Counted from the first letter of the stretch, positions 57,404 through 62,808 are shown. The stretch: DNA of 64,000 bases from Entomortierella parvispora E1425 (GCA_020891255.1 BQFW01000015.1:248001-312000), one strand, 5' to 3'. The notes: generated by a model from the letters alone, not told the origin. Numbers and translations are program-made.

Positions 57404-58435
57404 TTAGAATTTCCAGAACGGCCTCCTTCTCCTTCTCGATTCCATGTTTCGCTGGTGTTCTCTCGCAGCATATAATCTGGCCTGTTCGAGGGCAAGCTCA
57501 GCTTGAAGCTGCTCCCATTGAATCCTCTCTTGCTGTAGCCTCGCTTCCCTTTGTTCATTCTCCTCTGCCAACCTCATATTTTCTCTCTCGATCGCCTCTC
57601 TAGCCGCCTTCTCAGCGAGCTGTTGCTCTCTCGACTTCAAAAGCTTGTCATCTTCGTATTGTTTTTTCTTGTTTCCCAGTCCCATCTGCTCTTCTTCCAC
57701 GGCTGCCTTCATTTCTTGGGTATTCCTGTCTTGAATTTCAGCCATTGCTTCCAGTGCCTCCCTCTGTATCTGCTCCTGCTTTGCTAGCTCGGCATTGACC
57801 ACTTCACCGGCTGCAGTCTCGTCCAGAGGCTTGTTCAATTCAACCGTCTCGCGCTGAATTTGTAGGACAGCAGGCCGGTAGCAGAGAATGGACTCAAAGA
57901 TTCGATCCAAGTCGCTCTTGTCCCTGTATCGGTCGACCTTGCAACCGGCTGCTAGATACAAGTTCCAATACTCTGTCTTGAGTTCCTCCTCCCTCTCCAG
58001 AGCCTGGTCCTCGTCCATCATCCCCCATCGATTTGTGAGCATGACTACGTTCTGAAGAGAATCCTCGCCACAGAGTTTTTCAAAGATTTGCAGATTTTTG
58101 AGAGCACTGCCCCGTACCCGGTTCTCAAGAATGTTGTGCAGATAAAGGATACCAGAGACGCGAAAATCGTCCTTGTAGAGACGAGCGAGATAGTCGGCAA
58201 CCTCGGTGAGGACTTGAAAATCTGAGCGCTCCGTGTCATCGAAGCCAGGTGTGTCCAAGATCAAAACTGACTGGCCATTGATCTCACAGCAAACCTCTTC
58301 GATGTGTTGGGTGCAAGAATTGAGACCATGGCCAACTTTGATATCTTGACCGGAAACCTCTCGGACGAGGTGGCTCTTGCCGACGCCGGTGATGCCCATC
58401 ACGAGGATGATCTTGGGGGTGTCTGTGACCGTCAT
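57404..58435 (-). CDS. AIG1/GIMAP-like P-loop GTPase 1 with coiled coil; tail SRRRRRPFWKF
   Basis: G1 GITGVGKS, G2 SCT, G3 DTPG, G4-like TNRW. Intronless, 343 aa. Confidence 0.88.
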   Translation of the reverse strand: MTVTDTPKIILVMGITGVGKSHLVREVSGQDIKVGHGLNSCTQHIEEVCCEINGQSVLILDTPGFDDTERSDFQVLTEVADYLARLYKDDFRVSGILYLHNILENRVRGSALKNLQIFEKLCGEDSLQNVVMLTNRWGMMDEDQALEREEELKTEYWNLYLAAGCKVDRYRDKSDLDRIFESILCYRPAVLQIQRETVELNKPLDETAAGEVVNAELAKQEQIQREALEAMAEIQDRNTQEMKAAVEEEQMGLGNKKKQYEDDKLLKSREQQLAEKAAREAIERENMRLAEENEQREARLQQERIQWEQLQAELALEQARLYAAREHQRNMESRRRRRPFWKF

Positions 58436-58979
58436 GTTTGGTTCCTTGTGGGATGGGTTGAGTGAAGGAAGAAGGATGGAAAAGAAGGCGAGAGCAGCTG
58501 TGGATAGAACAGATTCATTATTCCTCAGGGGAAAGTCGACACCTTTCTGAACATGTTGCGTGGCAAAGTTAGGAAAGTAGATCTGCCCATTGTCACTCTT
58601 CCCGCTGGCAAAGCATCTGGCATTTCTTGCTCCTCATGCAATGTCGGGGCGAGATGGGGTCACAAAGACTTCCCGTTGCATTTTCATGGGCGCTGTGCAC
58701 AGGAGGGGCGAAGCTCAAACCGGGGAGCAATCAGGATGGTACATTTTTTTTTGATTTGGCGAAGCAGCGCACAGACTCAAGGAGCAGAGGAGCGAGACCG
58801 CAGGACCACATCTATCCTTCCACTTTCAAGCTGTGCCATAGATAGTACCTCCTCACTCGCAGGGGTGTGTATTTAAGAGGCAACTCCCCCACCCTGCTGC
58901 TCTTGTCTTCGCCTTTCTTCAACCCCATTCAACCTGCACCATCCCAACTCAAACTCAACCCAAACGCAAGCCTACCATC

Positions 58980-60017
58980 ATGACGCAAACCGCTCTTACC
59001 AAGATCATTATCGTCATGGGCATTACTGGCGCCGGCAAGAGCTACCTCATCAAGGAGATCTCTGGACAGAATGTCAAAGTTGGCACCAGTCTGAAATCAT
59101 GCACTCAACATATTGAGTCGGTTCAATGCGTCATCGACGATAAACCGGTGCTGATCCTGGACACCCCTGGCTTTGACGATACTCATCGATCCGACACCGA
59201 GGTCTTGACTGAAATCGCTGACCACCTGGCTAATCTCTACAGGAGCGGATTTCAAGTATGTGGCATCATCTATCTCCACAATATCCGAGAGGACCGTGTC
59301 CGGGGAAGCTCTTACAAGAACCTGAAGATGTTTGAAAAACTCTGCGGTGCGGGCGCGCTCCAGAACGTTGTTATGCTGACGAATCGGTGGGCAATGATCA
59401 ATGAGGCCGACGGAGAAAGAAAGGAGGAGGAGCTCAAGAGAGAGTATTGGGGCTTGTATGTGGCCGCAGGTTGCACCGTCGACCGATACCGCACCCGAGA
59501 TGATCTCGTTCGAATCTTCAGGGAACTCCTTTGCAACAATCCCTCGGTTCTTGAAATCCAGCACGATATGGTCGATATGAACAAACCCCTGTGCGAGACT
59601 GCAGCCGGCGAGGTCGTGAATGCCGAGCTGGCCGAGCAGCAGAGGAAGCATAGGGAGCAACTGGCCGAGATCGCTGCGGATTACGACAAGAAAAACTTTT
59701 TGATGAAGCGCACGTTGGATCAAGAACGGAACAAGTTAGAGGCTAGCTTGCAGCAGCTCGAAGCTGATAGAGTCAGGATGATGACAGAAGCGCAACGCGC
59801 CGAGGAAGCAGCCAAGGCCGGTATGGAGAAGACTTATCAAGAATGTGCTGAACGTGAAAGAAGACTGCAGGAAGAGTTCCAGGAGAAGATGAGAAGAGCT
59901 GAGGAGGAGAAGAACGCGGCGGCTCAAGAGTTGGCCAAGCTCGCTGCTATCCGTCAACACGAAGAAAAAATGGTTCGCGAGAGAGAACATCAGCGTTCTC
60001 GCTGCTGCATGCTTTGA
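58980..60017 (+). CDS. AIG1/GIMAP-like P-loop GTPase 2 with coiled coil; CaaX-like tail RCCML
   Basis: GITGAGKS, SCT, DTPG, TNRW. Intronless, 345 aa. Confidence 0.88.
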   Translation: MTQTALTKIIIVMGITGAGKSYLIKEISGQNVKVGTSLKSCTQHIESVQCVIDDKPVLILDTPGFDDTHRSDTEVLTEIADHLANLYRSGFQVCGIIYLHNIREDRVRGSSYKNLKMFEKLCGAGALQNVVMLTNRWAMINEADGERKEEELKREYWGLYVAAGCTVDRYRTRDDLVRIFRELLCNNPSVLEIQHDMVDMNKPLCETAAGEVVNAELAEQQRKHREQLAEIAADYDKKNFLMKRTLDQERNKLEASLQQLEADRVRMMTEAQRAEEAAKAGMEKTYQECAERERRLQEEFQEKMRRAEEEKNAAAQELAKLAAIRQHEEKMVREREHQRSRCCML

Positions 60018-60170
60018 TTCAGGCACACACAAAATAAAACCCAGATGCAGCCTTTTGCATCCATTATTCTAATTGATGCCATTGACAGCTGGTTGACCCG
60101 TCGCCCTTTACAACTTCTCGAGCAGAATCCTTCCGACAACAATTTTATTATACACTTGGAGTGTATCATA

Positions 60171-61205: not shown

Positions 61206-61617
61206 GAGTCTTGTTAATAATTTTTGTTCAATTGGTCGGGATGGAGAGCAGAATGAATGAAAGCAGTTGAGCTCAGGAATTTTTTGCAGACGCAAATTTG
61301 AGCTTTTTTTTTTTTTTTTTTTGGCAAAGTAAGCATCGCGTCTGTTTGTGATCAAACATGCATGCACCTGGGCTGAAGTACTGCACAGTGAAGTAGAGTA
61401 CAAATGGGTAGAGCTATTCTTCTTCCCGTGCTTTGCTTTGCCTTGCTTTGCCCCACAACTCTGGCAAAGTCTACCCTCGCCATTTTACCACAAAGCGCGA
61501 AACACCCAGCGAATCGTGCACGTTCCGTTGCGGGGACTACGGGATACATCATCTATTTAATGAGGGGCCACATCCACGTCCCCCCTCCACCTTTATCACC
61601 CACCATTTGCAAACCTG

Positions 61618-61636
61618 CCCCCCCCCCCCCCCCCCT
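61618..61636. repeat. C19 homopolymer just upstream of GTPase 4
   Basis: Direct reading. Confidence 0.9.
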
Positions 61637-61674
61637 AAACACCAAGCACTCTCACCCTCACTTTTTAATCCAAA

Positions 61675-62808
61675 ATGACAAGTGATAGAACAAGCGACAG
61701 TACAGGCGATAGCAGTACGAAGATCATCTTGGTTATGGGAATCACCGGAGCCGGAAAGAGCTATCTCATCCGAGAAATTTCTGGTCAAGACGTCGGCGTG
61801 GGTCATGGGCTGCAGTCGTTTACCCAGAATATCCAACAAGTTATCTGCGAGATTTCTGGCCATCCAGTCATGATCTTGGACACTCCTGGTTTCGATGACA
61901 CTCATCGCTCGGATACCGAGGTCTTGACAGAGGTTGCTGATTACCTTGCCTCGCTTTACGAGAACGGTTTCCGCGTCGCTGGTATCATCTACCTCCACAA
62001 CATTCGAGAAGATCGTATCCGAGGAAGCTCCTACAAGAACCTGCAGATGTTTGAAAAGCTCTGTGGTCAAGGCGCACTCCAGAACGTCGTCATGTTGACC
62101 AACAGATGGGGGTTGATTGACGAATCCGAAGCCATTATGAAAGAAAGCGAACTCAAGAAAGATTACTGGAACATGTACATCAAGGCAGGTTGCAAAGTCG
62201 ATCGATACAGGGACAGGCGCGATCTTACTCGAATCTTTGAAGGGTTCCTCAGTTATGATACAACGGTCCTCGAGATCCAGCACGAGATGGTGGATCAACA
62301 CATGCCACTCTGCGAAACCGCCGCCGGTGAGGCAGTGAACATTGAACTGGCGAGGCAACAAAAGGAACACAGACAGAAACTGGCAGAGATCGCCGCCGAC
62401 TATGATAGGCAAACCCAAGAAATGAAGGCCATCATGGACGAGGAGCGATTGAAGTTGGAGAATGGACTGCAGCAACTTGAGGTTGACAAAGCGATGATGA
62501 TGACAGAACAACGACGCGCCGAGGAGGCAGCCAAGGCTGGAATGGAGGAGGGGCTCCTCAAGTTGGCCCAGGAACAACAGAGGATGGAAGAGGAGTTCCA
62601 GACGAAAATGAAGGAGATTGGGGCAGAAAAAAATGCAGTTGCGCAGGAGCTGGCCAAGCTTGCTGCCATTAGGGAGCATCAAGAACAGAGAATGAGGATG
62701 AGAAATGATGACGGCGGGTTCTTTGGCTTTTTCAAAAATATGCTTGGTGGTACTCTTGGAGTCCTCGGGGGAGGCGCGGTCACTAAACTTCTTTCAAAGC
62801 TTTTTTAA
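61675..62808 (+). CDS. AIG1/GIMAP-like P-loop GTPase 4 with coiled coil and Gly-rich amphipathic tail
   Basis: GITGAGKS, SFT, DTPG, TNRW. Tail GGFFGFFKNMLGGTLGVLGGGAVTKLLSKLF. Intronless, 377 aa. Confidence 0.88.
   Translation: MTSDRTSDSTGDSSTKIILVMGITGAGKSYLIREISGQDVGVGHGLQSFTQNIQQVICEISGHPVMILDTPGFDDTHRSDTEVLTEVADYLASLYENGFRVAGIIYLHNIREDRIRGSSYKNLQMFEKLCGQGALQNVVMLTNRWGLIDESEAIMKESELKKDYWNMYIKAGCKVDRYRDRRDLTRIFEGFLSYDTTVLEIQHEMVDQHMPLCETAAGEAVNIELARQQKEHRQKLAEIAADYDRQTQEMKAIMDEERLKLENGLQQLEVDKAMMMTEQRRAEEAAKAGMEEGLLKLAQEQQRMEEEFQTKMKEIGAEKNAVAQELAKLAAIREHQEQRMRMRNDDGGFFGFFKNMLGGTLGVLGGGAVTKLLSKLF

Follow-up and report, generated by a model that had tools for sequence, protein, structure and literature searches.

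Why does a soil fungus keep four genes for one kind of GTPase side by side, each giving its product a different C-terminal end? The question is raised by positions 57404-62808 of a 64,000-nucleotide stretch of Entomortierella parvispora E1425 (GCA_020891255.1, BQFW01000015.1:248001-312000; hereafter the window), where four genes, here called A to D, had been read from the sequence alone as GIMAP/AIG1-like GTPases that share a catalytic core and differ in their targeting modules. GTPases of the GIMAP/AIG1 type have been studied in vertebrate lymphocytes, in plants and in some invertebrates, and the searchable literature on them contains almost nothing about fungi. The locus is a compact natural experiment, with one core, four ends and an arrangement that is repeated in a related species; it could reveal what C-terminal modules contribute to bringing an AIG1-type GTPase to its site, and whether its soluble and anchored paralogs work together. 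We think it probable that the cluster, which is common in full or in part to related Mortierellaceae, encodes fungal AIG1/GIMAP/Toc34-like ('paraseptin') GTPases, each made up of a G domain, a charged helical stalk and a position-specific C-terminal module that decides where the protein is located. Our analysis shows the structure of the genes, their fold class, purifying selection, and conservation of the tails and of gene order in the cluster; it also yields a predicted interface between two G domains.

A common GTPase core and its predicted dimer

The features of the cluster, in positions counted from the first letter of the window, are:

57404..58435, minus strand: gene A, 343 aa; G domain at about 57821-58435, helical stalk at about 57437-57820, tail RRRRRPFWKF and stop codon at 57404-57436 (from the open reading frame (ORF), Pfam and motifs)
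57377..57420, minus strand: imperfect 19-nt tandem repeat of 2.3 copies, holding the stop codon of gene A (Tandem Repeats Finder, period 19, 88% matches)
58436..58979: divergent intergenic region between A and B, 544 bp, a presumed bidirectional promoter, with TGGCAAAG sites at 58561 and 58606
58980..60017, plus strand: gene B, 345 aa; G domain at about 58980-59594, helical stalk, CaaX box CCML at 60003-60014, stop codon at 60015-60017
60171..61205, minus strand: gene C, 344 aa; G domain at about 60594-61205, a shorter helix (residues 207-259), beta-barrel at 60174-60416 (residues 264-344)
61206..61674: divergent intergenic region between C and D, 469 bp, a presumed bidirectional promoter, with TGGCAAAG sites at 61322 and 61462
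61675..62808, plus strand: gene D, 377 aa; N-terminus 8 residues longer, G domain at about 61675-62313, stalk, Gly-rich hydrophobic tail of 29 aa at 62719-62805

All four genes are intronless, since the lengths of their ORFs match single-exon gene calls on the same contig (P0004, P0001, P0008 and P0002). The ORF map and the gene calls agree on four intact single-exon genes in two divergent pairs, placed as originally described; B and C are convergent, with 153 bp between them. Gene C was counted from its ATG, a 410-aa ORF that begins at TTG adding only a 5' leader. Overall identity to A is 45–56%, and in the G domain B and D share 71% identity. When the four proteins are aligned the mean column identity is 65%, and nearly all of the approximately 115 invariant columns lie in the first 215 residues.

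Within these residues the motifs G1 (GITG(A/V)GKS), G2 (S(C/F)TQ) and G3 (DTPG) occupy equivalent positions in all four proteins, in AIG1-like spacing, and align to GIMAP4 and GIMAP7 across G1–G3. Three further motifs, E(D/N)R(V/I)RGS, LTNRW and ET(A/S)AG, are specific to the family and present in A–D. The proposal that motifs G1 to G4 are all shared thus holds for G1–G3 only, as the G4 position is occupied by LTNRW (TxxW family-wide, with T and W at least 90% conserved in an alignment of 101 members) without the canonical NKxD. The leading Thr of this motif resembles the AIG1/Toc form, and no acidic specificity residue follows it.

Profile searches place the core near AIG1 without matching that family cleanly. 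The Pfam AIG1 model (PF04548, cut-off 27 bits) scores B (29.0) and C (30.3) above its cut-off and D (25.9) and A (21.4) below it, while MMR_HSR1 scores all four above its own cut-off, at 33–38 bits (A 35.8), and higher than their respective AIG1 scores. Against NCBIfam there were sub-threshold generic GTPase matches only, with the Toc models far under their cut-offs. The closest solved structures by sequence are GIMAP4, GIMAP7 and GIMAP5, across G1–G3 only; sequence alignments to GIMAPs reach no further than G3 and so fall short of the AIG1 'conserved box'. A profile of 101 family sequences, compared with the PDB, placed GIMAP4 first (E 1.4e-8) with Der and Toc120/90 close behind. The AlphaFold2 (AF2) model of C has a predicted local distance difference test (pLDDT) value above 90 across the G domain and through residue 250, and in Foldseek its 31 best matches are all GIMAP7/2/1/5/4 or Toc33/34. 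The predicted fold is closest to solved GIMAP and Toc34 structures, helices beyond the Ras-like core included. From the Pfam scores, the sequence matches in the PDB and the predicted fold, we file the core as a divergent AIG1/Toc34-like (paraseptin) G domain; the fold matches together with the G1–G3 motifs bear out its first description as GIMAP/AIG1-like. Beyond the G domain lies the stalk, a proline-free stretch of about 130 aa in which 36–43% of residues are charged, and which forms one long helix in the model of C.

A complex predicted from B (residues 1–215), D (residues 8–225) and two GTP molecules scored 0.79, compared to 0.00 for the best control; of 78 solved complexes 51 attain this mark, as do 2 of 108 mismatched pairs. 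Agreement of contacts among the three runs was at least 100%, and the pLDDT of the partner was at least 89. The predicted interface is symmetric and runs head-to-head across the nucleotide pocket, bringing together the P-loop, switch I, switch II, the REDRVRGS loop and the helix that follows it. In the model R106 and R108 of B contact residues 23–25 of D, in the P-loop, and the reciprocal contacts are also present. The first of these two arginines (R106 of B, matched by R114 of D) shows at least 90% conservation among the 101 family members; it lies 42 residues past the G of DTPG, which we take to be the site of the arginine finger in Toc33/34. Arginine fingers have been viewed as common to Toc34/159, AIG1/GIMAP proteins and many septins (PMC11238149).

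We propose a mechanism in which the G domains would pair head-to-head across the nucleotide pocket, the near-invariant Arg reaching the P-loop of the partner as in Toc34 and GIMAP7, so that GTP binding would lead to dimers or oligomers and dimerisation to hydrolysis. B would be held at a membrane by a geranylgeranyl group, and D inserted or docked through its Gly-rich hydrophobic tail; C would be soluble, its small beta-barrel binding a ligand or protein, and A would retain only the polybasic-aromatic stump of an earlier hydrophobic tail. Soluble C could be recruited to membrane-bound B or D through the common G interface, much as soluble GIMAP7 acts on anchored GIMAP2, and mixed dimers are plausible given the near-identity of the four G interfaces. 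The parts of this proposal that we infer are the lipid modification, the identity of the membranes, hetero-oligomerisation and the biological role.

Four C-terminal ends

The four ends have the sequences first attributed to them: RRRRRPFWKF in A, CCML in B, an 81-residue beta module in C and a 29-residue Gly-rich hydrophobic end in D. That of B is a CaaL box which conforms to the CaaX pattern of geranylgeranyltransferase type I (Cys at -4, aliphatic a2, C-terminal Leu), a pattern kept among relatives. The C-termini of those that share its position in the cluster or its type of tail are CTIL, CMIL, CLIL and CLIL, and the recurrence of the box in five Mortierellaceae species, with variable preceding residues, upholds the CaaX-like end ascribed to B. 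Judged by this pattern, B is probably geranylgeranylated.

The end of D contains a GxxxGxxxG pattern and has a mean hydrophobicity of 0.47 and a hydrophobic moment of 0.51; its best 17-mer has a Kyte–Doolittle mean of 1.26, and the tails of relatives at the same position reach 1.81 and 2.49. By these sequence measures it is intermediate between amphipathic and transmembrane-like. It had been described as a Gly-rich amphipathic helix, of which the Gly-rich part is correct and the amphipathic part only partly so.

The polybasic-aromatic end of A can be read as the remnant of an earlier hydrophobic tail, since the stop codon lies inside the 19-nt repeat and since, when one copy of the repeat is removed in silico, the frame runs on as ...PFWKFLIVLVDLLHL before reaching a stop. 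This extension resembles the 'basic, FW, hydrophobic' tails of relatives. Gene A also has the longest branches in both the G-domain tree and the stalk tree. A polybasic targeting tail is therefore present in A as a sequence, although it is perhaps a truncation product.

Modelled on its own, the module of C forms an eight-stranded meander (up-and-down) barrel with pLDDT 90.4. Its fold matches are avidin- and lipocalin-like barrels, the best being the C-terminal barrel of the beta-lactamase-fold D-aminopeptidase 1ei5, and by fold it can be likened to other small beta-barrels such as Atu4866, the avidins and PliC/MliC. In an alignment of 17 module sequences nine residues never vary (L, Y, D, R, N, G, W, G, W), and the Gln of QxW is not conserved; Pfam yielded no match to the module at E up to 1. 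The module had been read as a QxW beta module. Having no Pfam match, no conserved Gln and an eight-stranded, avidin/lipocalin-like fold, it was rejected as a ricin-B-type QxW beta-trefoil lectin.

Comparison of the last 90 residues of C with 1.84 billion representative proteins gave ten matches, of which eight outside gene C are real. The barrel occurs in metagenome proteins (P0121-P0126, P0129) as 2–4 tandem copies, once after a signal-peptide-like N-terminus (P0123). In P0125 it precedes a protein kinase, and in P0126 it follows a RING finger, in a protein that also shows a weak, sub-threshold jacalin-like match. A feature search of the ESM Atlas with the module gave no usable match, and within the E. 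parvispora genome the module profile finds a single copy, in gene C (a prefiltered search, hence a lower bound). On the strength of the model, the module is best described as an undescribed, independently folding and mobile family of small beta-barrels; an unnamed barrel that is reused on GTPase, kinase and RING proteins merits attention.

On either side of the corresponding GTPase cluster of Mortierella sp. AD094 (see below) lie beta-lactamase-fold genes whose C-terminal domain is DUF3471 (L005, 4814-6723 and 15876-17558). Homology between the module of C and the DUF3471 barrel was considered and rejected at the sequence level (hhalign probability 0.1%, no Pfam match). Since the two have no sequence relation, we treat the 1ei5-like fold of the barrel and the presence of these flanking genes as a coincidence.

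Comparison among relatives supports the view that the four tails are distinct, selectively kept modules, since the CaaL box is maintained in five species and the beta module and tail-anchor type are kept at equivalent cluster positions. Several points nevertheless weigh against our interpretation of the cluster as a whole. As the G4 position (TNRW) is without the specificity aspartate, a preference for guanine is only assumed. The stalk had been called a coiled coil, and a long, proline-free, charged helix is indeed there, but a crude heptad score is no better than that of shuffled sequences (z -0.6 to 1.6), which does not support a coiled coil. The score of the B–D complex may reflect memory of solved GIMAP and Toc34 dimers, and cannot tell which paralogs pair. 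The value of 1.26 for the tail of D is under the threshold of 1.6 used for a transmembrane segment, and the tail of A may be non-functional, if its repeat is any guide.

Fungal relatives and the history of the paralogs

In a search for the wider family 8000 candidates were scored, of which 970 proteins matched at E up to 0.001. The best 120 source-named relatives are all fungal, from Mortierellaceae, Tuberaceae, many Pezizomycotina and Agaricomycetes, and carry generic names such as 'G domain-containing protein' or 'GTPase, IMAP member 8'. Copy number varies between fungi, with 3–5 copies per species of Tuber among the top matches. A CaaX-like end is found in 19 of the best 120, and a hydrophobic 17-mer within the last 40 residues in 17; among the CaaX types, Mortierellaceae have CaaL, several Sordariomycetes have C-x-(V/I)-M, and Basidiomycota have CVIC, CIIA and CVIA. 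These counts indicate that one core with alternative membrane tails is a property of the whole family, beyond this one locus. In Mortierellaceae the recurring tail types are the CaaL box, the beta module (six proteins), and a run of basic residues followed by GFW and a hydrophobic stretch.

Mortierella sp. AD094 has four adjacent genes on strands - + - +, as in E. parvispora, and their tails (amphipathic helix, CaaX, beta module, tail anchor) follow the E. parvispora order. Its first cluster gene (P0009, L005 7258-9002) is annotated as 466 aa, while an uninterrupted ORF at 7872-9002 on the minus strand encodes 376 aa with an amphipathic-helix end like that of relatives; judging from this ORF, the deposited model probably contains a spurious intron. 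Mortierella sp. AM989 likewise has four genes, in the order - - + +, one of which (P0019, L006 12025-13739) has a PP2 (phloem protein 2) lectin-like domain after the G domain in place of the stalk (E 2.2e-7). Its sister in the G-domain tree is the CaaX-tailed gene next to it (support 98/94), which suggests a recent duplication followed by a swap of modules.

Within the E. parvispora genome the family profile identifies genes A–D only, again as a lower bound from a prefiltered search. With the looser Pfam AIG1 model two further GTPase clusters appear, on contigs C13 and C14. The first (C13:666000-682000) consists of approximately ten tandem MMR_HSR1-type GTPase genes on the same strand, 228–459 aa in length and one with two G domains, nearly all of which end in a helix of a similar amphipathic or hydrophobic kind; here the genome holds a second expanded GTPase family whose tail is conserved. 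The other (C14:1545000-1558000) contains three large GTPases (527–617 aa) with the P-loop GETQ(A/S)GKST, beside two smaller AIG1-like GTPases; of two large ones scanned, one matches Dynamin_N and the other AIG1 weakly.

The duplicates A–D are old and under purifying selection, since synonymous sites between them are saturated (proportion of differing synonymous sites, pS, 0.70–0.82) while non-synonymous divergence (dN) in the G domain is low, at 0.19–0.24. Recent gene conversion among them was considered and rejected, as there is no near-identical tract (90-nt windows of the G domain are 57–86% identical) and synonymous sites have reached saturation. Between B and D the differences lie mostly in the last 10–30 residues; B is 66% identical to its paralog D, and 48–57% identical to Mortierellaceae relatives with the same tail.

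In a maximum-likelihood tree built from the G domain (32 rows, without the tails), the E. parvispora genes A, B and D form one group (91/84). This group is close to the barrel-type clade and apart from the well-supported CaaX, tail-anchor and amphipathic subclades of other species. Orthology by tail type was rejected by approximately unbiased (AU) tests on this tree, both for a single CaaX clade (p 8e-63) and for a single tail-anchor clade (p 4e-42), with groups that were set by tail before the tests but after the first tree had been seen. The stalk tree gives the same picture, with paralogs grouping by lineage and not by tail type. We lean towards old concerted evolution, which would have homogenised core and stalk within lineages and spared the last codons, because the cluster and its tail order are common to E. 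parvispora and AD094. Alternatively, tails may have been switched repeatedly on a common chassis; with most of the difference between B and D lying in those last 10–30 residues, such switching would be easy. The conflict between gene tree and tail type bears on how kits of this kind are maintained.

The same conflict could be read as a sign that the paralogs are largely redundant and their tail differences no more than drift, produced by frameshifts, small repeats and premature stops. That tail types do not track the G-domain tree, that B and D diverge chiefly at their ends and that the stop of A sits in a tandem repeat behind a tail that looks truncated would all be expected under such drift. 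It is very improbable, however, given that the CaaL box is kept in five species while neighbouring residues vary, that the barrel folds independently and is widely reused, that the tail order of AD094 is identical along the cluster, and that the 19 CaaX-like ends among 120 relatives are far above what random C-termini would give (by judgement alone, with no control count). Selection on distinct modules remains the reading we prefer for the tails.

The surroundings of the cluster include two other features. Immediately upstream lies an inverted repeat of 1005 nt (arms 51286-52290 and 54926-55930, 99% complementary), which sits among paralogous genes of 422–425 aa (ORFs 46183-47451 and 55602-56879, both on the plus strand) that match, in their C-terminal halves, the opening portion of a protein kinase domain; kinase genes adjoin the GTPase clusters of AD094 and AM989 too. 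The 64-kb window contains the octamer TGGCAAAG 8 times, and 4 of these occurrences, all on the plus strand, are inside the two divergent intergenic regions (1,013 bp combined). Around the sites the common core is only (C)TGGCAAAG(T). The octamer may be a cis-element common to both gene pairs, but its significance is overstated because the motif was chosen post hoc from shared 9-mers.

Possible roles and known systems

It is against this background that the biological role has to be weighed. One view is that the proteins are constitutive organelle scaffolds, housekeeping regulators of ordinary membranes such as the lipid droplets of this oleaginous species, the mitochondrial outer membrane or the vacuole, with the tails dividing the organelles between them. 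The strong purifying selection on the G domain and the conservation of cluster and tail order between species are as this view predicts, and a Toc34/GIMAP fold with tail-anchor architecture is typical of organelle-resident GTPases (Toc34 resides on plastids and GIMAP2 on lipid droplets). The listing of plant AIG1/IAN8 among prenylated proteins (PMC6866125) points the same way. The distribution of the family does not: among the best 120 relatives from the 8000 candidates scored, Mortierellaceae are represented by Entomortierella, Dissophora, Lobosporangium and unclassified Mortierella spp. only, and Linnemannia, Podila and Mortierella alpina are absent from those 120, yet Ascomycota are present down to 181 bits. 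With ortholog identity of only about 50% within Mortierellaceae and copy number that differs widely between fungi, we regard the housekeeping role as quite unlikely.

The sequence-only reading had favoured a cell-autonomous immunity kit, with GTPases that are induced by intruders and coat their membranes (for instance those of endobacteria-containing compartments, which in this strain would hold Mycoavidus), each tail being aimed at a different membrane. Such a kit would fit the GIMAP-like fold, the fast divergence seen between B and its same-tail relatives when set beside that between B and D, the multi-copy expansions in many fungi (e.g. Tuber), the exchangeable C-terminal modules, including the PP2 lectin-like domain of AM989, and the use of the barrel module on kinase and RING proteins as well. 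Moreover E. parvispora E1425 hosts the endobacterium Mycoavidus sp. B2-EB, of which the sequenced line had been cured (PMC8759367), and because the endobacterium of this strain is curable the immune hypothesis is experimentally approachable. Set against it, the family is wide in fungal groups (Tuber, Penicillium, Agaricomycetes) with no tie to endobacteria, and A–D are old and under purifying selection, with no sign in the genome of a recent arms-race turnover. PADLOC gives generic G1–G3 P-loop matches only (LeoBC, mad8), and a literature search found no paper on the fungal GTPase family of A–D and none tying it to defence. On balance we consider a dedicated immunity kit unlikely.

A more elaborate version would combine the predicted interface with the module of C in a hetero-oligomeric surveillance machine, where the barrel senses a microbial or damaged-membrane ligand and C pairs with B and D to build GTP-dependent coats on particular membranes, as a fungal counterpart of GIMAPs and GBPs; the lineage grouping of the cores would then reflect selection for compatible G interfaces. 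We offer this as a speculative model that is unlikely to be correct. Between the broad alternatives, we judge a variable function, related to interactions or stress, to be somewhat more probable than a core housekeeping one.

Among known systems the guanylate-binding proteins (GBP1/2/5) offer a functional analogy, since in them, too, a GTPase is accompanied by a helical stalk and a CaaX box at the C-terminus. They are of the dynamin-like class, with a G domain that is much larger. The parallel drawn with them at the outset comes down to a sub-threshold match of the Pfam model PF02263 (16.8–17.6 bits against a cut-off of 21.1) over residues 7–82 only, the P-loop region, and the fungal proteins are not members of that family.

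Pathogen-induced roles have been documented for plant AIG1 genes, and plants have AIG1–PP2 fusions that resemble the PP2-bearing paralog of AM989. AIG1-type G domains occur in tandem clusters in the plant AIG1/IAN family as they do here, and Arabidopsis AIG1/IAN8 is listed among prenylated proteins (PMC6866125); the fungal family differs in forming a separate clade and in scoring higher with MMR_HSR1 than with AIG1. From Toc33/Toc34 the fungal proteins differ in being without the Toc34 M domain, as well as in falling far below the cut-offs of the NCBIfam Toc models. To our knowledge, fungi have neither a plastid nor a Toc complex.

The vertebrate GIMAPs (GIMAP1/2/4/5/7) include the nearest solved structures by sequence and are among the nearest by fold, with AIG1-type G1–G3 motifs and helical C-terminal extensions; they too are clustered paralogs with soluble and hydrophobically anchored members, and a G-interface dimer with a trans arginine, predicted here, was described for GIMAP7 and GIMAP2 (Schwefel et al. 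2010, 2013, as cited in PMC11238149). The differences are that identity in structural alignments is 13–18% and sequence matches cover G1–G3 only, and that the fungal proteins have TNRW at G4, a far longer stalk, and probably prenylated as well as barrel-bearing forms. Snail GIMAPs have transmembrane and coiled-coil versions (PMC7053062), and Toc34/159 have C-terminal anchoring modules (PMC12845241). Since each tail type thus has a precedent in the wider AIG1 world, the kit of E. parvispora can be seen as a fungal version of a known design.

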